Assembly: GCA_011109175.1 (NCBI GenBank)
Contig: RDEW01000009.1
Location: forward strand, 981,652-1,045,651
Origin: Dicyema japonicum
Lineage: Eukaryota > Animalia > Dicyemida
Direction of reading: 5' to 3'
Length of the DNA: 64,000 nucleotides
The notes below the pieces were generated by a model that did no database searches, was not told the origin of the DNA, and saw only the letters and a program-made list of their open reading frames with translations. How positions within the stretch are numbered: the first letter of the stretch is position 1; every line of letters begins with the position of its first letter. Of this stretch, positions 3,338-39,230 are shown in pieces. Position numbers and translations under genes: made by a program.

Positions 3338-5631
3338 ATGCTGCTTATTTTGCTGATTTCAAATATACAATCTCGTATAGCCCAGAATTTTATTGATAAT
3401 CTTTGTTGGATAAATTCAGAACAGTATTAATGACGTTTTGTTAGTAATTTAACTAATTTAAAGGTATTAAATTACTAGTTATGATTTTTTCATTGAATAC
3501 AATTTAATTCTTTTGTTTCTAAATCAGGTAAAAATTTAACAAATTCATTATATAAGGTTTTAACAAAACTGATGAAGATTTTGTTTTAACAATTATGCAA
3601 AAAACAACTGAAAAATCAAATAATCCAAGAAAAATAGAATTACTAGAAAATCTAACAAAAGAAAAACGAAAATGATTTCATGAATAAATTTTCTGCTATA
3701 ATTGGTTTAATTTTAAAATTACATCAAGAAACTATACGAGAAGTTACATTAATGCCTTCACCAACGCCTACAACAACGCCTACAACAACGCCTACATCAA
3801 CAACTACACCAACATCTACACCAACATCAACTCACCAACACCTTCACCAACATCAACACCAACACTCACACAACTACACCACAACATACCACAACACACC
3901 GACAACTACACCAACACTTTCACCAACAACTACACAAACATCTAAACCAACATCAACACCAACAACTCCACCAACATCAACACCAACAACTACACCAACA
4001 CCTTCACCAACAACTACACCAAAAAGTGAATTAAATGAGGACTATTTTGAAGTTAGTATTTTAATAATTTTAAGATTATTAGACAACTCAATAATGAGTC
4101 ATTATCTTTAAAAATTAATGAGAAATTATCAATTATCGAAAGATAAACCAACAAAACATTCAAAGAAACTCTCGGGGATATTACTTGGATCGATCAAATG
4201 GATTTAAAATCAGGATCTACTATTTCCACCGATTCAATTGTAGTTAATATACATCATAATGAAACAAAGGGAGACGGTATGGCAGGATAACTATCTTTAG
4301 CTCGTATTTTAGTTATTAAAAATAATGAAACAATTATCGATGGTAAAGAAACCAAACAAATCGATAGAGTGGTGTCAATAATTTTTAATAATGAAAATAA
4401 TAACACCGAGAGTAAAATCACTAAAGTGACTATTTTTTTCCAAGATATTATTCAGAAAATGCGGTATAACTATGTATGTGTTTATTGGAATAACGGATTA
4501 TGGGATAATGAAACTATGAAAACGGAAATTAGTTCAAATGACAGTGTAACATGCACTACTGAACATCTTACTAGCTTTTCAGTCTTATTCGTAATTTTTC
4601 ATATAAATTTAGAATTCCAGAAAAGGTCAATTAAATTCTAAAAAGACAGCAACCTCATATATCACCATTATTGGATTATCTATATCAGAAATTTCAATCA
4701 TTATTTCATTTATTATTTTCTTTAGTCAATTCAAGTTATATTTACTTAGTTTAGACTTTTAATTAAATCTCAGATTCAGTTGACGTTGATTAACCTTGAA
4801 ATATCAATTTTCATAACAAATACTGTTTTTATATTCGGAATTTTCTCAGGATTTGAAAAATCTTTTATTCAATGTGTCACTGTTGGAGCACTATTACATT
4901 ATGGGCTACTAACTCAGTTTTTCTGGATGCTTTCCCAGACTATAATTCATTATATAAAATTCATCAAAGTTATTGGCATGAACATAAATAATTTGATTTT
5001 AAAGATTCTTACAATTAACTGGGGTTACTCTTTCTCATAATTTGCAGGAATACCTCTGTTAGTAGTTATTATCATATGTGCAGTTTCAAAAATGCGTATT
5101 ATTCGGATAACAAGTAAATGTTGATTCAATATTTAAGATATATGTTGCATGGAACTGCATTCTACTTGAGCCTGTTAGTTCCATGTGCAGTTATTTTTTT
5201 AATTATCACAATTTTATACTTTTACATTTTCTACAAATTCATTTATTACAAAATAAAACTAAAATCAATCAATTAAAAAAATCAACAAATTCAATATTAA
5301 TTTTCTTATTCTTTCTATCGGGTTTATATTTTTTATTTTTGCAGGAATTAACTGGTTCTTGGCCTTTTTCCTTGAATTTGATGAATTTAAAATAATCGAA
5401 TACATCTTCTGTATTTTAGTGTGTCCACAGGGCTTAATTATTCTAATATTGAATATTCACAATAAACGCAAAATGTCTAGCAGATTCCGACCGCACTATG
5501 GTAAGAAATACACGAGCAAAAAAACAACAACTACACTGTCAAGTTCCCCAATGACTACACCAATGCCCACACTCACGTTTATAGAATTAGTTATTGTAAG
5601 ACGATTTTGTAGGTATTTTAACAATAATTGA
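3338..5631 (+). CDS. Adhesion GPCR: signal peptide, Thr/Pro mucin stalk, GAIN/GPS, 7TM; frameshifted in this assembly
   Basis: MLLILLISNIQS start and a PTTTP tract at 3755-4022. GPS motif CVYWNNGLWD...CTTEHLTSFSVL at ~4470-4590. Downstream hydrophobic helices include CVTVGALLHYGLLTQFFWML and YIFCILVCPQGLIILIL. Short introns are present (e.g. gtaatttttcatataaatttag). Confidence 0.85.
3755..4022 (+). repeat. Low-complexity ACA/CCA repeat encoding the Thr/Pro mucin-like stalk
   Basis: Repeated acaccaacatca/acaactacacca units. Confidence 0.9.
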
Positions 5632-5658: not shown

Positions 5659-7110
5659 TTAAAACGTGTTAACCTTTGTAGAGTTGTGCATGTACATTTC
5701 AGCATGAAAGAATAAAGCGAGGTTTCTTAAGAAGAGTACTCCTCTGCTACCTCTCAACTTTAAAATTGGCATGCCGTGGGGACATCTCAGATAGAGAATA
5801 AGAATTACAATGTCGTCGGCATAAGTCAGAATAATATCATTTTCGGCGTCCGGTGTGGAGGGATCCTTCATGAATAGTAATAATGACAAAGGGGATCCTT
5901 AAGAACATCATTAGATAGAAGCCGAAAAATAGATCTTGAATGGACATTGCAGACGCGTCCCCTACGACCACTAACGAAATTAGCTAACCAGATCTTTAAC
6001 TTTCCAGGGATCTTTGATGGTAAATTTTCCTAGGAAGAATCCTCCTTGACACAGAGTCAAAAGCTTTGTGGACGTCTATGGAGCAAAGTACAATTTTCAT
6101 GTTTCCCGACCTGTACGAGAAACCATATCGTATAAAGCTAGTCAATGCAGATAAGTGCGTCGAAATAGACCTCTCCTTTTTAAAACCATGTTGAAATGAC
6201 GAGTCCGGGAAGATATTTTTGATTTTCGCAAGAACCAGCCTCTCCAGAATTTTCGACACCGAACACAATAACGCGACCGGCCTGTGTGAAGCTGGGTCCT
6301 TCTTCACTTTACTGGGTTCAAAATTGGACGTAGGTGGGAAGCTTCCATAAGGCTTGAATATAATTTTTGTTAATAGAGTGGTTGAATATCCTCGTTAATG
6401 AAGCGATTCCATAATCATCAAGATTCTTTTGGAGGATCATTGAGATCTTATTAGGTCTGTTAAAATAAGTTGTTTTAATTGTTATCAATTCATTTCTCAT
6501 CTCTTTTTCAGTAAAGTACATCATATCAGGTTCCTTTTTTCGGTTTAATGAGATATAAAGGGGGTATATCCGACTTTTAAGGTCCTTGTGATGATATTTC
6601 ACGTAATATTTTGAAATTATTCAAATCCTTTTGCTTTGATCCACCTCAGATGATCCTTCATCCTCTCTTGAGACGTCAGCATTGGATCTATTTCCATTTA
6701 GAGAAGAGTGCACATGCTTCTATCTTTATTTTTGCTTTAATCTACCTGTTTTTTAATTCACTATTCAAAATGCTCATTCTAAGCTTATCATCAATAATTA
6801 ATTAGGAAATTTTTTGAGTTCTTTTCTTGATTGATGCTGACCTGCCATATTCCCTGGCCTAGTTAAGGTGGTGTTTGGGTACAGATAGTGATTCCGCATC
6901 CAAGATAGTGCGGTTTACATAAGCAACTACTTTGTCTATGGAAGTAATGCCATCCAGATACTGCAGTAGATTGTCAGTAAGTGTACGGTAAGGTCTCCAG
7001 TCTGCACGTTTGTAGTTGAATTTTCTGGGAAACTCCTAGTTAAAGTATCTCTGTTGATCTCAGAAGAATGGCATTGTGGTCGCTTCTTAAGTTGTAAGCC
7101 ATTTATTTCT
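5659..7110 (-). mobile_element. Degraded APE-type LINE ORF2 (endonuclease end plus RT)
   Basis: SDHNAIL-like EN end at ~7090. RT motifs HRPVALLCSVSKILERLV, FQHGFKKERS, SIDVHKAFDSV, QGSPLS and TYADD, all with stops or frameshifts. Confidence 0.85.
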
Positions 7111-7896: not shown

Positions 7897-8115
7897 ATCC
7901 ATCGTATGGTAAAAGAATATCCAAACGAGCTTAGGGATATTGAGTTGTGCTACAAAAAGGAAAATGAGCGAAGGTATTTTTCAAATTTATGTATAGGTTT
8001 AATTTTCTGATGGAAAAAGATCGGTCTTAATGTCAAGACTTAAAAATATTTTTTTTTATTATTTGAAATAAATTCTTTGTTAAATCTAGCAATTATCTAG
8101 TTACCATGGAAACAC
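7897..8115 (+). repeat. ~220-bp near-identical inverted copy of 17944-18167 (end of LINE ORF1 plus flank)
   Basis: atccatcgtatggtaaaagaatatccaaacgagc...ttaccatggaaacac is the reverse complement of 17944-18167. Confidence 0.85.
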
Positions 8116-8296
8116 GTAAAAAACAGGTTGACAATAGGCATCAAGCCACCCATATAACTGTTCTTACTTAAATAAAGTGTATCTCATGTCTGAGAGGAGC
8201 TAAGCTAATATGGCCATTGTTAATGTGGAGTATTTTTTTGAAGAAACCAAATTATTACCCATTAAAACACCAGAATTAATCATTGAATACATCATT

Positions 8297-8970
8297 TTAA
8301 TCTGCTGGCTTCATTTGTCCTTAAAATAACCATTAATTTAACCATCCTCATTAGCGAGCACAAAACTTCCTTCAAATAATAATTAATTAAACCATTTGGA
8401 AATAGCAGCATTGTGGGTCCTTAAAATAACCATAAATTTAACCATCTATAAAAGAGACCAGATAAGTTCCTTTAAATAATAATTAATTAGACCATTTGGA
8501 AATTGTTGGCACTTTATTCTTTAAAATAATAATTAATTAAACCACGTGAATGTGTTGAAGATGTTCGCTTCGTTGGTTCTTAAATAATCATAGATTTAAC
8601 CATTTGAATATGGCGGTATTGTTAGTCCTTAAATAATCACTAATTAAACCACGTGAATATGAATCAAAATATTCTTAATTACCTCACTGGAAACAGGGTC
8701 AATTAAGCGTCCTCAAATATAATTTTAGATATAACCATTTGATAATATTTTCCTTACCACCTCCAATTCAACGTTTAAAATAGATTCTTAAAATAATCAT
8801 TAATCGAACCATTTATATATGGTCGTGTCGTTGGTTTTTTAAATAATTATTTATAAACTTTTTGTAGTCATTTCAGACTCAACCTCATCCTCTGTTTGTC
8901 CGAAACCAAAAGTTATTAATATTTTACTTGTGTATTTGGTTAAAAATAAAATACAGCAAACGATTGTCAT
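8297..8970 (-). CDS. Micro-exon gene: 11 exons, 10 introns of 22-24 nt, ~148-aa putatively secreted protein with 9-aa Gly-turn repeats
   Basis: Exons 8970-8859, 8836-8810, 8786-8736, 8711-8650, 8627-8601, 8578-8543, 8518-8493, 8469-8443, 8419-8393, 8369-8343, 8319-8297. Intron consensus GTTWAATTAATKRTTATTTWAAG; all introns phase 1. Spliced C-terminus ...IKCQQFPNGTYLVSFIDGPTMLLFPNGSFVLANEDGQMKPAD*. Three 1-nt fixes are needed for a fully open frame. Confidence 0.72.
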
Positions 8971-9023
8971 TTGAATGACCAAAATCATTTGATTATATAT
9001 ATAAAAAAATCTGATTCCGCCAA

Positions 9024-9335
9024 TGTGGCGCCATGTTTTGATATGTGGCGACTTGATTTAAGATTTCAGTTTGTTTGTCTATTATTCCTCTTCCCTTTCC
9101 TACTAGAGTGCCGTCATGTGATCCACCTGTCCCAGGCTGGCACAAAAATGATCCCCCACTCCATTGGAGAGGTTTCCACAACTGCAAGGAATGTAGGTCT
9201 ATTACCTTTTATGCTGGTTCCGGATGATGGACTCGTGTGATGTTGAAGGACTCAGTTTCTGTAAGAGTGGAAACTGGATACACTTAATTAGTTGTTTACC
9301 GTGTCTTCTTTCTGGTATATCCGGGGTTAATAAAG
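9024..9335. repeat. Interspersed repeat family B copy
   Basis: Core cccccactccattggagaggtttccacaactgc...tccggatg...gtggaaactggatacac is the reverse complement of the 2291-2878 units. Confidence 0.8.
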
Positions 9336-12999: not shown

Positions 13000-14080
13000 A
13001 TGACGTCATCCGACAATACCGCCGTCCGGTAGCGGAGTAGAACTCATAACTTTTGTCAAGAAAGTGATCATCTACAGCGTGAACACCAAAATTGACAGCA
13101 TACTCTCGCCCATCTCCCCACGGATAGACATTGAAGTAGTCACGATTACGAATATGTACAACTCCTTCCAGTTTTAGCCCGAAGTACTTCAACCTCAACT
13201 GGCAGATCTCCGTAAAACACCCGGCTTAGTTCAACAAGCAACTGGCAAATCTGGATGACCTAGTAATTTTATAAACACGAGAACACTGTACAGATCCAAA
13301 GATAGTATTACATCCCCCGAATTAACACTCGCTTCTGGTAGTATCGCCCCTCTCGTCAGTTGGCTTTTGGTTTTTGACTTAAAGAGTGACCCCAACCCTA
13401 CACTTATAGTGATAAAAGGAAAAGCTTTCACAAAAAAGAGACAGCCCAGGTTAGACTATAAGAATGTCGATTGGATGAAATTCACCCACTTCGTTGACTA
13501 TAACCTGGTCGGATACAAAATGAAAACTTTTAGGTCCACTAATAGCTCAGTCTCCCATTTCAACTGAATAAAAACGTTTATGAGAAACCCACCTACTACT
13601 TTGGGGTGATGATAGATTTAAAACAGTTAAATTAATAAGACAAAATCAAGAGTCTTCAAACCAACACATGAGATCAGGGAAAGACCCTTGATAATGTCTT
13701 CAAACTGAGGCCACAACAGTTGGAGATATAAATATCCTGATTGCTGTGGGAAGTTGATAGTAGCGGATTCTTGAAACCATGGATCGGGTCTTTGTATATT
13801 GATGAAGATAAATTCCCTCGTGAGCTTATAAAACGAATCAGTAGTAGAATCAGCCTTTTCAACAATTGTGCTGGTAAGCGCGAGTGACCACAATCCTATT
13901 TTATTGACGATCAGGAGGGAAGTATTTTGTGAAAAAAAGTCGATCTACAAATACAATTTCGCAAACTGGAACCTTTTCCGGATTATTACTGAATACCGTT
14001 TGGCTGAGGTAAATCTGGAAGATTATCACATAAATGACGGCGTATCACATTATTTATTTAACACCCAAGACCACGATAAA
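13000..14080 (+). mobile_element. Degraded LINE APE-endonuclease fragments (mirrored at ~15680-16730 on -)
   Basis: TSPELTLAS...DLKSDPNPTLI...RLDYKNVDWMKF and SASDHNPILLTI...KYNFANWNLF, both EN C-terminal SDH-type motifs. Confidence 0.75.
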
Positions 14081-14333
14081 ACCAAAACTAACTATCACGT
14101 GATCCCGATGCGCTCCGCCAAAATCCTCATTCTTTCCCGGTGCTCCTCCCTCGTATCCACAAAGCTCGTACAGGGCGGATTACTGTATTTGCAGGGCCAC
14201 CTTCCCGCATGCCAGAGCTTTGTTTAATAAGGGCCTCCAAAGTAGTCGGTCCGGTTCTGTGTGTCCCACAAGATCACCGTTCCGTAATTCTGAAAGCCTT
14301 TTTGAACGTCCCCAATCTTCTTAATGTTCTCCC

Positions 14334-15070
14334 TTCTTTGAGAAAAGGAGTTGTTGACCTGACATTTCTCTGTTTCATCTTCGCCCAGATCGTTTGGAAC
14401 GTCAATGAACTGAGTTGTTAATTACACCAGGGGACTGGTAGCTTTAACCACAACTTCTGAGACTGCACTCGGAATATAAGCGATGTAAGAGTCATCACCA
14501 GCTGTGGCACTCTTAGACAGACTATAATGTATGTCTTTCTTTTGCACCTTTTATGTTTATTTGAATAATAACAGGGGAATGTTGACTTTGAGTTTATTTC
14601 TGTATTGCCAAAACTCAATAATAGTGGATTCCCATTTATATATTTGTTAAATGGCAACTGTTGTCTCACGTATACAAAAAGGTTAAATAACAACATTATG
14701 ACCAAATAGTAATATTATTCCAACGGTGGAGGTTCACAGGAATCATCAATAATTGGGGGGTTCTTTCTTTATATTTGGTTTCAAAGTAATGCTCACAACA
14801 TCATTGAGAGAGACTGATTGAGACTTGTAAGTTGTCCTGTGTTTATAATTCCTAAATGATATATTCTCCTTTACTTTGAATTGTTAATATTATTTGAGAC
14901 ACGTGGTTTTGATAACATAGTATTATTGTTGATCTGATCTTCAATTACACAATTACCTTCGGCATAGTAATTGTCAAATGTCCTGTTATCTTAGAACGTT
15001 GACAAATTGACATTGATGGTGAGATCTCCTCCTCAAGACATAATTGAAAGATCTCGATAATTTAAGTGAG
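14334..15070 (-). pseudogene. LRRC6: Duplicated 3' end of LRRC6 (last three exons, introns retained) plus ~380 bp of 3' flank
   Basis: Reverse complement of 21602-22335, near-identical. Still reads [31 protein letters not shown]...EPPPLE*. Confidence 0.9.
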
Positions 15071-15074
15071 CGAC

Positions 15075-15680
15075 TCAACGCCTGAATAATGAAGAACCGA
15101 CTCACGATAAATTCCAGAAAGTCGGTCACGTCTATGTTTACTTCGGACAAAAGGTTGGGGAAGATGACTGCCAAGTTAAAATTGGACAACATTGAAATCC
15201 CCTTCACTAAATGTCAGAAGATCCTGGGCGTGACACTGGATACACACCTATGTTTGTCACCACACGTGGCAAACATTGTTCTGAAGTGCGAGAAGAGGAT
15301 CAATGTATTAAAATGTTTATCTGGAATATGGAAGACAGGTACCCACCCAGTCTTGATGAACATTTACAAGCAATACATCGAACCATGCTTCTCGCGAACA
15401 TTAAGAAGATTGGGGACGTTCAAAAAAAGGCTTTCAGAATTACGGAACGGTGATCTTGTGGGAGACACAGAACCGGACCGACTACTTTGGAGGCCCTTAT
15501 TAAACAAAACTCTGGCATGCGGGAAGGTGGCCCTGCAAATACAGTAATCCGCCCTGTATGAGCTTTTGTGGATACGAGGGAGGAGCACCGGGAAAGAATG
15601 AGGATTTTGGCGGAGCGCATCGGGATCACGTGATAGTTAGTTTTGGTTTTACCGTGGTCTTGGGTGTTAAATAAATAATG
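15075..15680 (+). mobile_element. 5'-truncated LINE ORF2 3' end (RT thumb and C-terminus)
   Basis: KNRLTINSRKSV...KCQKILGVTLDTHLCLSPHV...YKQYIEPC, ending in gtgttaaataaataa. Confidence 0.85.
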
Positions 15681-17905
15681 TGATACGCCGTCATTTATGT
15701 GATAATCTTCCAGATTTACCTCAGCCAAACGGTATTCAGTAATAATCCGGAAAAGGTTCCAGTTTGCGAAATTGTATTTGTAGATCGACTTTTTTATCAC
15801 AAAATACTTCCCTCCTGATCGTCAATAAAATAGGATTGTGGTCACTCGCGCTTACCAGCACAATTGTTGAAAAGGCTGATTCTACTACTGATTCGTTTTA
15901 TAAGCTCACGAGGGAATTTATCTTCATCAATATACAAAGACCCGATCCATGGTTTCAAGAATCCGCTACTATCAACTTCCCACAGCAATCAGGATATTTA
16001 TATCTCCAACCGTTGTGGCCTCAGTTTGAAAACATTATCAAGGGTCTTTCCCTGATCTCATGTGTTGGTTTGAAGACTCTTGATTTTGTCTTATTAATTT
16101 AACTGTTTTAAATCTATCATCACCCCCAAAGTAGTAGGTGGGTTTCTCATAAACGTTTTTATTCAGTTGAAATGGGAGACTGAGCTATTAGTGGACCTAA
16201 AAGTTTTCATTTTGTATCCGACCAGGTTATAGTCAACGAAGTGGGGGAATTTCATCCAATCGACATTCTTATAGACCAACCTGGGCTGTCTCTTTTTTGT
16301 GAAAGCTTTTCCTTTTACCACTATAAGTGTAGGGTTGGGGTCACTCTTTAAGTCATAAACCAAAGACCAACTGACGAGAGGGGCGATACTACCACAAGCG
16401 AGTGTTAATTCGGGGATGTAATACTATTTTTGGATCTGTACAGTGTTTTCGTGTTTATAAAATTACTAGGTCATCCAGATTTGCCAGTTGCTTGTTGAAC
16501 TAAGCCGGGTGTTTTACGGAGATCTAGCAGTTGAGGTTGAAGTCCTTAGGGCTAAAACTAGAAGGGTTGTACACATTCGTAATCGTGACTACTTCAATGT
16601 CTATCCGTGGGGAGATGGGGGAGAGTATGCTGTCAATTTTGGTGTTCACGCTGTAGATGATCACTTTCTTGACAAAAGTTATGAGTTCTACTCCGCTACC
16701 GGACGGCGGTATTGTAGGATGACGTCATAACCAAGAAAGTTGGGAGAAGGGGAAGAACTGGTAAGGCTGAAGACAAATGATGATTATTGAGTATTGATAG
16801 AAATCGACGGACTTCAAATATCTTCCTTTTACTCCCTCGATGTTTCGGCAGTTGATGAGGGTTAGGCTGAAATGGGGGATGGGATTTATTTTGACACCCC
16901 AATGATAATCAGGAGATAATAGGGTCAAGAAGGGTGTCGTCTGAACTGCAATTAACTCACTTAAGTGGAAAACCATGCGTCTTCTTTTCTTATATGAAAG
17001 GTACTCTCGAAGAATCGACCAGAACAATGGCCGGAGATTCTGGGTTTCTGCGAACAACTAGGAAATCCATTTGGGAAAAAGTTATATTGTGGGGAATCCT
17101 GAAAGGACACTTCATCGAGTTTCTCTTCAGAAATTCGAAAAGACACTTCCAGAAGACGATGGGATCGCTGGGAGTCTGAGAATTTCCAGAAGTTGGTATC
17201 ATTTAGTTGGCTTTGATGCTGGGTTCAAGGTTTTCTCTTTTCCACATTGGCAGTGTCCCTTAGTCCATGCCGGCATCATACGTGTCAGCATAAATTTACC
17301 CTTCTACATATTTTGTGGTGAGTTTATACAGACATCCATGTAATTGGCTTTGTTATTGTTCGTAGATATGCAATCGTGCCTAACATTTTTAAATATTTAT
17401 ATACTTCTTTTCCAGTTGTCCGAGGCTGTTTGGCGACGTTTCGCACGAGTAAAGATGGAGAACGTCTTGTAATTTGTGTTGTTGCTTCTGACATGGGTGG
17501 AATACCAAATCGATTATATCTCATAATAGTGTTTATAATTGATTGGAATATTTACGTTTTTGAGACCATTATATATCCTCTACTATCTTGAGGTTCTCGT
17601 TCTACATGGTCTGATTTTAAATGGACGCTCTTTTCTTTTAAATTCGGACTTTGTTACTCGTCAATCTAGCATACATAATCTAGTATGTATGAAACAAATT
17701 GGAAATGTATTAATGTAAATGAATGTTAATAATTAATGTTGGAGCGTAATAAAAACAAAAATAGTTAAAAACAGAATATTGCTATGACTTTTTTCCACTG
17801 AAAAATAAAAATTCAATAAGAAATTGAGATTCGCGTCGATTAAAATAATGAATATATAAAAATAATCATTAGCATTGTTAGATGTTGAAAAACGACATTA
17901 TTATA
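15397..17905. repeat. Right arm of the long inverted repeat, ending at an N (17906)
   Basis: Reverse complement of 11823-14329 with scattered SNPs and 1-nt indels. Confidence 0.92.
16930..17591 (+). CDS. Uncharacterised protein fragment with a WYHLVGFDA motif (right-arm copy)
   Basis: ORF 17071-17343 contains SWYHLVGFDAGFKVF; ORF 17376-17591 ends in a hydrophobic stretch. Confidence 0.35.
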
Positions 17906-22619: not shown

Positions 22620-23760
22620 TAATGTGGCCTAGACGGAATTCCTTTTATTCTGTTGAAACACTTGGGCCCAGCATCAATAAATGCATTGACAATCATCTAC
22701 AACACATCGCTAGATATAAATACCATACCGACTTTATGGAAACTATCAAAAAATCGTACAATATTGAAACCGGGAAGATCGAAGAACAGTCTCCTTTATA
22801 TGTGTATTGTCGAGAATCCTGGAGAAACTGGTCCTAAAACTTATTCACCCCTTCTCTCTCCCACAACCTACATTCCAACATGACTTCAAGAAAGGATTAT
22901 CAACAACCTCCTTCCTAACAACACAATGAAGTTCATAACTGAAGGACACAAGAACAAGCCAAAACAAGAAAAATCGGTCATATGTACAATCGACATTCAA
23001 AAAGCATTCGACTCTGTCCCAAGGAAAATCCTCAAACAAAAATATTTTGACAAAAATTGATACACCACTAAAGTTATGGATAGCAAATTTCTTAAGTGGA
23101 CGCCGAGGGAAAGTGTCCGTCGGAAACAAGAGTTCCAGATCGGATTATTACCCAATGGTGTACCCCAGGGATCTCCTTTGTCACCAATCCTTTTAATTTA
23201 TTTCTGAATGATCTCCCCGTACCTATGAATAATAATGACATGCTACTTTCCTATGCCGATGACATAGTTGTTGCATGTAGGACGTAAATCGAAAATGCTA
23301 AAGAAAGACTACAAGGAACACTAAATAACATATATGGATGGCTATTCGAAAATCGATTAAATGCATGTTCCGAAAAGTCAGCAGTCACTCTATTCACTAA
23401 GAATAGAAAGATGGGAATGCAAACAATTGATTTCACGTTAAATGGAGTGCCTATACCACAAAAGAAATCGCAGAAGAAACTGGGAGTAACTTTTGATACT
23501 TTCCTCTGCTTCTCAGCCCATGTGGAATCTATCATTTCAATCTGTGCAAAGAAGATAAACTTTGTAAAGGCCTTCCTTTGTAACTGTGGATTAATTTATC
23601 CACCATGTGTCAGGACCCTCTACAGGCAGTACATCGAGTTAACAATAAGCTATTCACGTGCTGTGTGGGGATTTAACCTTGCGGCAACGAACCTAATAAA
23701 AATTCATGAGATCCAGTCAAAGCAAATTACTGGTAAAATATACGGATAAAGAAATTGCCC
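22620..23760 (+). mobile_element. Degraded LINE ORF2 RT
   Basis: KHLGPASINALTIIYN, IDIQKAFDSV, PQGSPLSPILFN, SYADD and KKLGVTFD. Confidence 0.88.
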
Positions 23761-27262: not shown

Positions 27263-27880
27263 TATTATTATTATTATTATTTAAGCACTTCACAAGAGCC
27301 ATACTAATTATAGCCCCGCATGTGCAGCAAAAGAAACAAGGTTAGATGTCATCCTTTTCCATGCTCCCCTGTTCCTAGCCAAGGCTCTCATGCTGTCCAG
27401 GTCGTCGGCATTTGTTAGATTTTTTTTTATACTGACCAGGTCTTTTTGTAAGACTATTGGCAGTGTTGTTCTTGGTCTTCCCCGATAGCGGCCTTCTTGA
27501 CTAACATAGTATGTTTCCATAGATATGTTCGGTGGGGAAGTTAATTCCATCCTCAGCACGTGTCCGAAGAGCCTCCATCGGGATTCCAGTACTTCTAAGC
27601 TGATAGGTCTAGTGCTGCATCTCTTATATAAAGCATTCCTAGATATTCTCGTAGGCCAAGTAGTTCCTGTTATTTTTCTCAGCTGACCTCTGTGGAACGA
27701 GTCTAGTTTTTTCATATCCGCTGATGAGGTCGCCCAAGTTCCAGCGTTATATATAAAATCATGGAGCACGACTTTTCAGTAAAAATCATGGAGCACGACT
27801 TTTCAGGACTTGTGTGTAGTTGGTCTTAGTAAGCCAACAGTTCAGGTTGTCCAGTAATTCTTGTAAGCGGGTACCCTCTG
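27263..27880 (-). mobile_element. Young RTE-clade LINE 3' end with (TAA)n tail
   Basis: Open 153-aa ORF YNAGTW..KLDSFHRGQLRKITG..RWRLFGHVLRM..RGRPRTT..ARNRGAWK, then a short 3' UTR and a taataataa tail at 27263-27282. Confidence 0.88.
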
Positions 27881-33804: not shown

Positions 33805-35055
33805 ATGAAACTGTTATATTTCGCAATATCATTAGCAGCCATCAGCGCTTACACGTATAGCTCGTAAATATTATAGAATAAAATTAAAAAAAGGTTATTT
33901 GTCTAAGAGCAAACGATTTTCGAGGATGATTCTACTGGAGTAACAAAATAGTAATCGGTGACTACAACCAAGTAAGGTTAAATGACTATAGAGATTCAAT
34001 ATTACGGGAAGATATACATTGGGACCCCAAGGAAACTATTCACAGTCTTGTTCGACACGGGATCCTCAAATCTGTGGATTTATTCCAACCTGTGCAACTG
34101 CTCTAATGGTACATTAAATCAATTCAGTGGGAGTTAAAAAATTCAGCAGCAACCAATCATCGACTTATCGACCGAACGGAACCTCCATTAAGATCCGCTA
34201 CATAATGGGATCAGTCTCGGGGTACATCGGGGAGGACGACTTTTTGGTTACTTTTATTGTGACCCCAAAGATTGCTGGAATCACAGTTAAAGGCCTCAAC
34301 TTTGGGGAGATCACGAATAGATCACGAAACTTCAAATATGCCAATTTTGATGGAATTTTCGGAATGGGGTACCCTAACCTTGCAGTCGATCGGTTGATCC
34401 CCCCAATTCAAGCTATGAAGAACCAAAAACTTATAAAACGATCAATTTTCTCGTTTTACTTGTCACAGTACTTAACCACCTCTAATCTGTAGAAATTCGG
34501 AAGAGGATGGGGAACTCACTATTGGGTTCATTGACAGGTCTCGTTACGTTGGGGGGATTACGTGGATTCCTGTCATCGAGAAGTTCTACTGGAAGATATA
34601 CAGCGACAGGTTAGTGGTTCGTAGTAGTATAGGATAATTTTCCGAGATTCAATTTGGAGAAGACTGAGGTGATCATTGACTCGGGACATCACTGATGGTT
34701 GTCCCGCCTGATTTCCTCAAACGGATTTACTTATATGTGAATGCTACAATAGAGAATACATTTGTGGGAATAGTGGGGGTTATTTTAGGGATTCGTAGAT
34801 TGCAGTCAAATGAATTCGTTTGACCCCCTGATATTCGTATTTCAAGGAAGAGAGTTTATAATGATGCCTAAGGATTACATTCTAGTCGCCGACAAGGCTT
34901 ACTACCCTGTACTCGAGCCTGGGGAGAAAATTTGTTTCATGGGATTTCAACCCTCCCTGGAAGACTACTTCATTCTGGGGGATAACTTTATAAGGAAGTT
35001 CTACAGTGTCTTTGATTTTGAGACTGACTCTGTGGGCCTGGCTTATGCAGTTTAA
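33805..35055 (+). CDS. Cathepsin D/E-like A1 aspartic protease
   Basis: Signal [16 protein letters not shown]; [20 protein letters not shown]; [10 protein letters not shown]; second catalytic IDSG (34678, followed by a 1-nt homopolymer deletion); [15 protein letters not shown]...VGLA. Confidence 0.93.
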
Positions 35056-36578: not shown

Positions 36579-36987
36579 TAAGAATATCAATGATTTCAAG
36601 TCATAAGTAAACTAGTATGGATATCAATAATGCCAAGTCACACACGTACCCTAAGTAAAGCAGGTGGAGTATCAATGATGTCAAGTATCCCATGTGTCAT
36701 AAGTAAGATTATAAATGATATCAAGCCACCCACGTGTCCTGAGTAGCCCAGGTAAGAGTATCAACAATGCCAAGTAAGCCACGTACCCTAAATAAGGCAG
36801 GTAAGAGTATCAATGATGTCATTCACTAACATGTACTGAGTAAGGCAGGTAAGAGTATCAATGATGTCAAGTAACCCACTTGTCATAAGTAAGGCAGGTA
36901 AGAGTATCAGTGATGTCAAGTAACCCACTTGTCATAAGTAAGGCAGGTAAGAGCATCGGTAATGTCAAGTAACCCACTTGTCTTTAG
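36579..36987. repeat. 49-bp minisatellite, ~9 copies, most homogeneous at the 3' end
   Basis: Unit aaggcaggtaagagtatcaatgatgtcaagtaacccacttgtcataagt (starts at 36842, 36891, 36940). Confidence 0.9.
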
Positions 36988-37446: not shown

Positions 37447-39230
37447 ATGAAAGTTGGGAAATTCTTTCTAAAGGAGAAAGAGTTTAGCAAGTTTCGAACA
37501 AATCGATGTGGGGATTTCCTCCAGCAGAATTGCAGTCGCCACAAGCCATTTGTTTGTCCTAAATGGCACTTTGAAAACCAATATCGGAGGATGAATATTC
37601 AGCATGAAGACGGGACTTTCAATTATTGTGCGGAGTTCTACTGCCCACACTACAATGAAATAAAGGGCGAATGTCCCCACGGAGAATCGTTGGGAGTGGT
37701 ATAATTTTAGTTGCCCATTTCTCCACAGAAATGTTGACGATTCCGAACGCTTGTTTCATCCAAGATTCTACAAAACCGCTATATGTTCCTCTGGAGTTGA
37801 CGACAGTGGGATTTGCACAAAAAATGGGGTCAACTGCCCATACTCACATTCCCAGGAAGAGCTCAAAGCTCCAGTTTTTGACATCCGGGAGTTCGTCATG
37901 GACAATTACATAGACTGCACCACCAACGATTTCTCTCCCCTCTCCCTGGACGACTGGTCTAAGCTTATGGCGGAGAAAACGCCTTACAGTACCCCCATTT
38001 TGTTGAATAGACGCCGAGTATATTTCCGTGACCTACAAAACAGAGGCGTGTCGAAAACCAGCACGTTTATGCAGACAGGGCTTCGCATGTCCTTACTACC
38101 ACAATTCCAAGGACAGACGGAGAAGTCCTGAGAAATTCAAATACGAGTAATCCGAAGTTGTCTATTTAAGTGCGTCGGCGTGTTCATTCGTCAAGTTCGG
38201 TCAGGAGTGGATGGACCCTAAATTGTGTAAGAATGGGGATCTTTGCTTCACTGTCATACGAGGACTGAACAGCAGTTTCACCCACGTGTTTGTTTTATTT
38301 TTGGGATTTTAGGTGTACAAGACTTCCAAATGCTCCGATCTGACTGCCCGTCGGTATTGCCCCCGACGACAGTTCTGCGCTTCGCCCACTCCGTTGGTTT
38401 GCCGTTCCGTGATTTTAGCCGAGAAGAACAAACACTTTGAGGCAATCCCTGAACCTACCATCTCTTTGCCAAGAAAGGAACCGCCAAATTCTTACGATGA
38501 ATCTCGTCCTTGGTGGGTAAATAAGGTCAATTTTTCTCCCTCTGCTTACTCCACCACCAGTGTACAAGTTGGGTACTAATCTGATCCTTTTAGTGTTTAA
38601 ATCTGATCCCCCAAAGTCTTCACTGTGAGCCTCATAAATTACAGAACGACTCCGGGTATTCCTGTGGTAATCCGAATCACGCCATCCGCCCAAATTCATT
38701 CAGCATACAGTTAAATCTCAATGTATGTTGTTTATGTCAACTTAGCGGTCTTATTCCTGCACAAGCGTGGATTCGTTCTCCACGAGGAGCTTAGTTAGGG
38801 ATCCGAAGAAAACGGGCTCGGACACACCCATTTCAAAAATGACCCGTCAGACAGATTTTTCCACAAAAATTGACTGTCTTTCCAACGTACTTTGCTTTTT
38901 GAGGTGTAGGCCTTGGAAGGCTGGAAGAAAGACTCCGACGTCGCCAAACGAAGGATCGAGGCCGCCGAGGGGCAAATAAGATCTGTAATCAAGGTCACTA
39001 ATTGTTAGATTTCTCAGAGAATCTACGCTAGTAATGACCACGAATTGGCTGAGGTTAACAATATTTGAAGAATTTAAGAAATATATCAAGGACTCCTTCA
39101 ATCTAGACAAAAAGTCTGTTTCTGAGCTGATGTGTCTTTTGGATGGACTCAAGGCCCAGCTTAGAGTTTATGAAATTGTATTACCTTGCTTATTTCTCCT
39201 AGAAAGTACGCTTCGAGTCATAATTAGTCG
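37447..39230 (+). CDS. UNK: Unkempt-family CCCH zinc-finger RNA-binding protein (frameshifted; 3' end uncertain)
   Basis: KFRTNRC..QQNCSRHKPFVCPKWHFENQYRR...DGTFNYC..YNEIKGECPHGE; FHPRFYKTAIC..CTKNGVNCPYSH; CHTRTEQQFHP; YKTSKCSDL..YCPR. Confidence 0.93.

Follow-up and report, generated by a model that had tools for sequence, protein, structure and literature searches.

The array at 8297-8970 in the window, i.e., the whole 64,000-nt stretch of Dicyema japonicum DNA that was analysed, is probably a real, small protein-coding gene on the minus strand, in which predicted splicing would remove a series of introns of 22-24 nt. On the plus strand, the array appears as an AT-rich unit of about 23 nt that recurs with a 50-nt period and alternates with unique spacers. 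Tandem Repeats Finder gave periods of 50 and 100 nt, and a repeat search placed the copies in register. On the minus strand, the same interval exhibits ten AT-rich units of 22-24 nt, each of which starts with GT, and all the introns are in phase 1. We read the array as a coding gene because a single frame is open once the units are removed, because the exon lengths are multiples of three, because the apparent lesions are repaired in public reads, and because paralogous exons are also open. The earlier note had proposed a hidden minus-strand gene at this locus; its exon lengths and peptides were reproduced in an independent intron/exon table, again with a single open frame.

Exon 1 (8859-8970; this and all the following parts of the gene are on the minus strand) has 112 nt, starts at ATG 8970 with MTIVCCILFL..., continues with an acidic stretch and ends in phase 1. 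A second in-frame ATG is found at 8988. The N-terminus is hydrophobic, with a Kyte-Doolittle mean of 2.2-3.1 over residues 1-18 counted from ATG 8988, and has no charged n-region. Just upstream of the start codons, TATATATAA at 9003-8995 is a possible TATA box, and transcription would start near 8975-8990. Inside exon 1, GTAAAATATTAATAACTTTTG (8926-8906) could be a further intron, of 21 nt and of the GT...TG type, the removal of which would preserve the frame. Exon 1 (43 residues) gave no Pfam match, and a phmmer search against 1.84 billion protein representatives returned only a chance match of 20 residues, which is a weak negative. Exact look-ups of the exon 1 open reading frame from either ATG returned no record, which is equally a weak negative.

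Intron 1 (8837-8858, 22 nt) runs from GT to AA in the window and precedes exon 2 (8810-8836, 27 nt), which reads (K)PTTRPYIN. After intron 2 (8787-8809, 23 nt, GT...AG), exon 3 (8736-8786, 51 nt) encodes (E)SILNVELEVVRKILSN and is followed by intron 3 (8712-8735, 24 nt, GT...AG), the most diverged copy. Exon 4 (8650-8711) comprises 62 nt in the window, i.e., it is 1 nt short of a multiple of three, as had been noted earlier. Intron 4 (8628-8649, 22 nt, GT...AG), exon 5 (8601-8627, 27 nt, (G)LTIPPYSN) and intron 5 (8579-8600, 22 nt, GT...AG) lead to exon 6 (8543-8578, 36 nt), which reads (E)PTKRTSSTHSR; its read depth is 5-7 times the local level, which indicates that part of exon 6 is multi-copy. 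Exons 4 and 6 both end with CACGTG (8650-8655 and 8543-8548), directly before the donor GT. Intron 6 (8520-8542, 23 nt) is the second intron that ends with AA in the window. With these intron borders, exon 7 (8493-8519) comprises 27 nt and reads (G)IKCQQFPN; the 26 nt that had been given for this exon does not hold, and the 27 nt that had been considered for it does. The remaining parts are regular: intron 7 (8470-8492), exon 8 (8443-8469, (G)TYLVSFID), intron 8 (8420-8442), exon 9 (8393-8419, (G)PTMLLFPN), intron 9 (8370-8392), exon 10 (8343-8369, (G)SFVLANED) and intron 10 (8320-8342), where each exon has 27 nt and each intron has 23 nt and reads GT...AG. Exon 11 (8297-8319, 23 nt) comprises the last coding part, (G)QMKPAD, and the stop codon TAA at 8299-8297. 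Thus, eight of the ten acceptors are AG in the window and two are AA (8837 and 8520).

When the ten units are removed, the predicted frame contains no stop from ATG 8970 to TAA 8297, versus 15 and 10 stops in the other two frames. In shuffled versions of exons 2-10, the spliced frame was open in a fraction of only 0.0002 of 20,000 trials (about 2 in 10,000). The independent exon lengths (27, 51 and 36 nt, as well as 63 nt in the public reads) are multiples of three, and the internal exons are all symmetric (phase 1-1). The exons are richer in G+C than the introns (35% vs 14.5%). They had been described as mutually paralogous, and two classes can indeed be recognised by their endings: exons 2, 5, 7 and 9 end with F/Y-P/S-N, whereas exons 8 and 10 end with D. 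The motif CCAACR is read as Pro-Thr in exon 2, in exon 6 and in exon 7 of the public reads. According to the intron/exon table, three Asn-x-Ser/Thr sites are present, solely across the junctions between exons 2 and 3, 7 and 8, and 9 and 10; such junction-made sites might weakly suit an exported glycoprotein.

The introns resemble each other to different degrees. Introns 8 and 10 are 96% identical, and intron 9 is 91% identical to introns 6 and 7, while introns 1-3 are the most diverged copies (65-75% identity) and keep the GT and the length of 22-24 nt. A degenerate 23-nt intron motif gave seven matches with at most three mismatches, all on the minus strand at 8320-8809, for a chance expectation of 0.01, and it does not occur elsewhere in the 64-kb window. 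The whole window was also scanned for runs of tiny AT-rich introns between open, symmetric exons, and the array was the only long chain of this kind. Counting AT-rich 19-29-mers of the GT...AG type, with TG...GA as a control, was a crude census and gave no information. Against the gene model stands the extreme load on the spliceosome that ten 27-nt exons between 23-nt introns would represent.

Introns of this size are not foreign to the organism. Among 51 animal genomes, only those of myxobolid myxozoans and of Dicyema japonicum have such tiny introns (PMC13644364). The window itself contains a pepsin-like aspartyl protease gene at 33982-35055 (+) with two 25-nt GT...AG introns (34109-34133 and 34468-34492). 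The Pfam Asp profile runs on across both 25-nt gaps (profile positions 1-35, 43-148 and 148-190), which proves the presence of tiny introns in the window. The introns of the array match these control introns in size and fit the length typical of D. japonicum, about 20-27 nt. In the second active-site motif of the pepsin-like gene, the frame appears to shift by one base at a G run (34683-34685); the shift is either a homopolymer error of the assembly or the mark of a broken gene.

Public sequence data provided an independent test of the gene model. Logan contigs from four runs of one public sample (X1-X4) were placed on 8000-9300. These runs behave like DNA: introns, exons and non-genic flanks are covered to an even depth (about 25-40 in X1-X3, about 450-560 in X4), the contigs continue beyond the gene into the repeats that flank it, the depths of two alleles at 8220-8315 add up to the local depth, and no 22-24-nt skips are found in the contigs of the four runs. 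Since they behave as DNA, these contigs say nothing on splicing. The entire gene is located in a single-copy island (8176-9055) between high-copy repeats at 8000-8175 and 9056-9300, according to the depth table.

In all four runs, the contigs depart from the window at precisely those three places that had been flagged as lesions, namely 8520, 8837 and the 62-nt exon. At 8520 and 8837, a T>C change on the plus strand gives AG acceptors on the minus strand, so that introns 6 and 1 read GT...AG and all ten introns are GT...AG in the contigs. In exon 4, one additional base at 8664/8665 gives 63 nt, and the repaired exon ends with ...SYSR-G, in a similar way to exon 6 (...THSR-G). The window and the contigs exhibit about 13 differences in 880 nt, and we roughly estimate at 1e-6 the probability that the three required repairs would occur by chance. 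Exon 7 contains two compensating 1-nt indels in the contigs (8516 and 8498) and reads (G)NKVPTISN, and exon 10 carries an N>Y replacement at 8352. The indel differences between contigs and window, including those of exon 7, are differences in homopolymer length. The D. japonicum assembly is a merged one with a PacBio/Falcon component, which such differences fit (PMC6736024). The suggestion that the three lesions are errors is therefore supported by the AG at 8520 and 8837 and by the 63-nt exon 4. The lesions may instead belong to a real minor allele, because minor alleles are lost from Logan contigs and X1 does show the window allele at 8220-8315.

The contigs also exhibit one extra 51-nt intron+exon unit between exons 7 and 8 (joint 8503>8467, with 14 new letters). 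The count of ten introns is thus correct for the window, and the public contigs have one unit more. The intron of the extra unit is identical to intron 7, which is therefore present in two identical copies in the contigs. The exon has 28 nt with the usual acceptor, in which case the frame would shift and the protein would end in exon 10. An internal CCAG acceptor in this exon would instead give an in-frame exon of 18 nt, (E)PTFPN. The contig with the extra unit holds an exact repeat of 32 nt, which is unexpected from a 31-mer assembler. As read, the 28-nt exon counts against a fully intact gene.

These observations bear on the possibility that the micro-exon gene family is real but that the copy at this locus is decaying, or is a null allele, and no longer makes the full protein. 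We consider this unlikely. The two AA acceptors and the 62-nt exon of the window allele would be expected of a decaying copy, but none of the three is found in the contigs of any of the four runs; two of them, like the exon 7 differences, are differences in homopolymer length, which the PacBio/Falcon part of the merged assembly would be expected to produce (PMC6736024). Moreover, the conserved pepsin-like gene of the same window also has an apparent 1-nt frameshift at a G run. The allele found in the reads has a frame-shifting 28-nt exon of its own, which speaks for decay when the usual acceptor is used, although the internal CCAG acceptor would restore the frame. Decay is further favoured by the possible existence of the window allele as a minor allele dropped from the contigs, as X1 indicates, and by the fact that no product was found among the protein representatives searched with exon 1.

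Three other contig joints, which come from elsewhere in the genome, exhibit the same introns around different spacers. Each of these spacers has exactly 27 nt and is open in phase 1, and they read PTTPAYSY, SIIRSFRI and TTMPTHSR. Compared with exon 2, the PTTPAYSY exon has three consecutive synonymous third-base changes, which keep Pro-Thr-Thr, followed by replacements. The depth rises locally at 8528-8571 and at 8792-8835, which is consistent with several paralogous copies. As the three paralogous exons are open in the same phase, the array belongs to a small gene family.

Exons and introns of the array diverge at very different rates. Between two 100-nt double units, 21 of the 54 exon sites differ versus 3 of the 46 intron sites (Fisher p = 1.3e-4), i.e., exon divergence is about six times that of the introns between them. 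Across the five regular units, almost no variation is found in the intron columns or at the exon edges (the first two bases and the last three to eleven), whereas the central 15 or so exon bases, corresponding to about five codons, differ in most copies. The exon differences are in excess at codon position 2, with the limitation that the compared pairs are not independent. The introns of D. japonicum generally conserve just GTa...AG (PMC13644364), which means that the likeness among the introns of the array is not a generic splice signal. Diversifying selection on the exons, exchange of introns between units, and an unusual constraint on the packed introns remain as explanations for this pattern of fast exons and similar introns.

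Based on these observations, we propose the following model for the gene and its product. The ten or eleven micro-introns would be removed singly, as intron-defined units, which is suggested by their anatomy. In the transcript, the 112-nt exon with the hydrophobic start would precede nine micro-exons (ten in the public reads), which are symmetric, in phase 1 and mostly of 27 nt. The earlier proposal of expansion through tandem duplication of intron+exon units is supported; the duplicated units would be of 50 nt and, most recently, double units of 100 nt. During this growth, the introns and the exon edges would have remained similar, with fast divergence of the central five or so codons of each exon. 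The predicted product has about 150 residues and would consist of G/E-x5-(F/Y)-(P/S)-N nonapeptides and three longer segments. The segments would begin with a split Gly, Glu or Lys codon and mostly end with Asn, Arg or Asp. This product is probably exported; its transcription, splicing and secretion are predictions from the DNA. Beyond a small, presumably exported repeat protein of a fast-evolving family, we assign no function to it.

How the exons vary is a more speculative matter. Tentatively and with low confidence, we suggest that the near-identical micro-introns and the conserved exon edges serve as homology linkers, through which slippage or unequal exchange would add, remove or reshuffle 27-nt cassettes in the DNA. 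Selection would diversify the five central codons of each cassette, possibly together with exon skipping, in an exported protein of the parasite. Such a turnover at the DNA level is hinted at by the difference of one unit between the assembly and the reads, and by the same introns being joined to other 27-nt exons.

Alternatively, variants may be made at the RNA level, with exon skipping giving many in-frame isoforms of a secreted protein of the host interface. Because the internal exons are in phase 1-1 and are multiples of three, any skip would be in frame, the exons diverge fast, and the micro-exon genes (MEGs) of schistosomes work in this way (bioRxiv 10.1101/2023.06.21.545858). A single skip would, however, need an intron of 73 nt, and the retention of a 22- or 23-nt intron would break the frame. 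Where introns have only about 23 nt, it is the intron that is recognised as a unit, and systems of this kind mostly retain introns rather than skip exons. For these reasons, we regard a variant generator based on exon skipping as quite unlikely.

A non-coding reading, in which the units merely resemble introns and form a minisatellite or an array of AT-rich binding sites, is very unlikely. A tandem repeat of 50 and 100 nt is not out of place in a repeat-rich genome, and the GT and AG ends, being inherited by duplication, are not independent of each other. However, the open frame of exons 2-10 is improbable by chance (p = 2e-4), exons of differing length are all multiples of three, and the reads repair the coding lesions. 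The diverged introns 1-3, at 65-75% identity, still exhibit GT and a length of 22-24 nt. In addition, divergence should be spread evenly over the unit of a plain satellite, whereas the variation is here concentrated in the spacers. The same window contains a negative control for this comparison: at 36703-36982 (+), a 49-nt tandem repeat of 5.7 copies, the units of which begin with GTAAG...CAAG, was a candidate for a second micro-exon gene. Since each frame of either strand contains 4-10 stops, this repeat was classed as a plain minisatellite instead.

A CRISPR array, which the alternation of conserved 23-nt repeats and unique 27-nt spacers brings to mind, is refuted by the animal-genome context (a GPS motif, the pepsin-like gene and an Unkempt zinc finger in the window, and conserved genes with tiny spliceosomal introns), by the absence of any RNA family match, by repeats that are not palindromic, by spacer lengths that include 36, 51 and 62 nt, and by spacers that read as one open reading frame once the repeats are removed. 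The hidden gene is the preferred reading of the locus.

The other features of the window are those of a repeat-rich animal genome. The D. japonicum assembly has 36.7% G+C and 49% repeats, with many LINEs (PMC6736024). The window also averages 36.7% G+C, and LINE fragments are present in it. Remnants of LINE/reverse-transcriptase-like open reading frames are found at 5996-6602 (-), 13868-16102, 23411-23749 and 27308-27769, and some are duplicated in inverted orientation, with the same peptide at 13868-14227 (+) and 15420-15800 (-). High-copy elements flank the array at 9056-9300 and 8000-8175. A 279-nt unit is tandemly duplicated at 2282-2839 and exhibits a 75-nt inverted match with 9152-9226. 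The summed contig depth of these three high-copy elements (9056-9300, 2282-2839 and 8000-8175) exceeds the single-copy level by a factor of a hundred to several thousand. They look SINE-like, and an Rfam scan of the entire window returned no family. Two other animal genes were recognised on the plus strand. An adhesion-GPCR-like gene at 3680-5631 comprises a Thr/Pro-rich, mucin-like open reading frame with a 12/24/36-nt repeat at 3754-4022, followed downstream by a GPS motif (Pfam PF01825, E = 4e-9, 4369-4638) and hydrophobic segments. An Unkempt-like CCCH zinc-finger exon is present at 37751-38128 (Pfam PF25427, E = 3e-13).

If the array is spliced as read, ten or eleven introns leave a pre-mRNA of about 0.67 kb, i.e., one every 50 nt, and the exons are shorter than the footprint usually assumed for the spliceosome. 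Under the same condition, the gene would be a natural test case for intron definition when exon and intron are both tiny. Open reading frame tracks do not reveal micro-exon genes with tiny introns, and such genes are readily masked as satellites. A class of small exported proteins may therefore be absent from the 5,012 genes published for the D. japonicum genome.

Parts of this architecture are known from other systems. In the genes of snake-venom PLA2 and of conotoxins, accelerated exon evolution is accompanied by conserved introns, and the exons diverge several-fold faster than the adjoining introns, as in the array. Nevertheless, whole paralogous genes are compared in those systems, whereas the units compared here are inside one gene, where homogenisation of the introns is possible. 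The neuronal microexons of vertebrates and insects, of 3-27 nt, belong to the same size class and also preserve the frame; in contrast to the exons of the array, they are isolated, regulated exons between long introns and do not form arrays. The exons of fibrillar collagen genes, of 54 or 45 bp, are each one repeat block that starts with Gly. As in the array, the exon is the repeat unit, exons were duplicated in tandem, and a Gly is found at every exon boundary. However, collagen exons start with an intact Gly codon (phase 0) and are separated by long introns that do not resemble one another, and they encode Gly-X-Y repeats instead of the nonapeptide found here.

The closest comparison, which had already been proposed, is with the MEGs of Schistosoma. 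In the literature library that was searched, no paper covers dicyemids together with micro-exons. MEGs are described as specific to Schistosomatidae, with a coding sequence that mostly comprises micro-exons of 6-81 nt in multiples of three and with introns of 0.1-5 kb (bioRxiv 10.1101/2023.06.21.545858). The comparison holds for the architecture: most of the coding sequence lies in symmetric, multiple-of-three micro-exons, preceded by a longer 5' exon with a hydrophobic leader and followed by a short 3' exon. Both are gene-finder-resistant, have fast-evolving exons and occur in a parasite. The internal exons fit the size range and the multiple-of-three lengths of MEG micro-exons, with the extra exon of the reads having 28 nt. 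The comparison does not hold for the introns, which have 22-24 nt in the array versus 0.1-5 kb in MEGs. Moreover, the array, unlike MEGs, consists of tandemly duplicated exons and introns, and its introns are near-identical. On these grounds, we judge that the locus at 8297-8970 is not a member of the MEG family and that its likeness to MEGs is architectural. If the array is spliced as read, it would show that fast-evolving micro-exon genes arose outside schistosomes, in another parasite lineage and with the opposite intron architecture.
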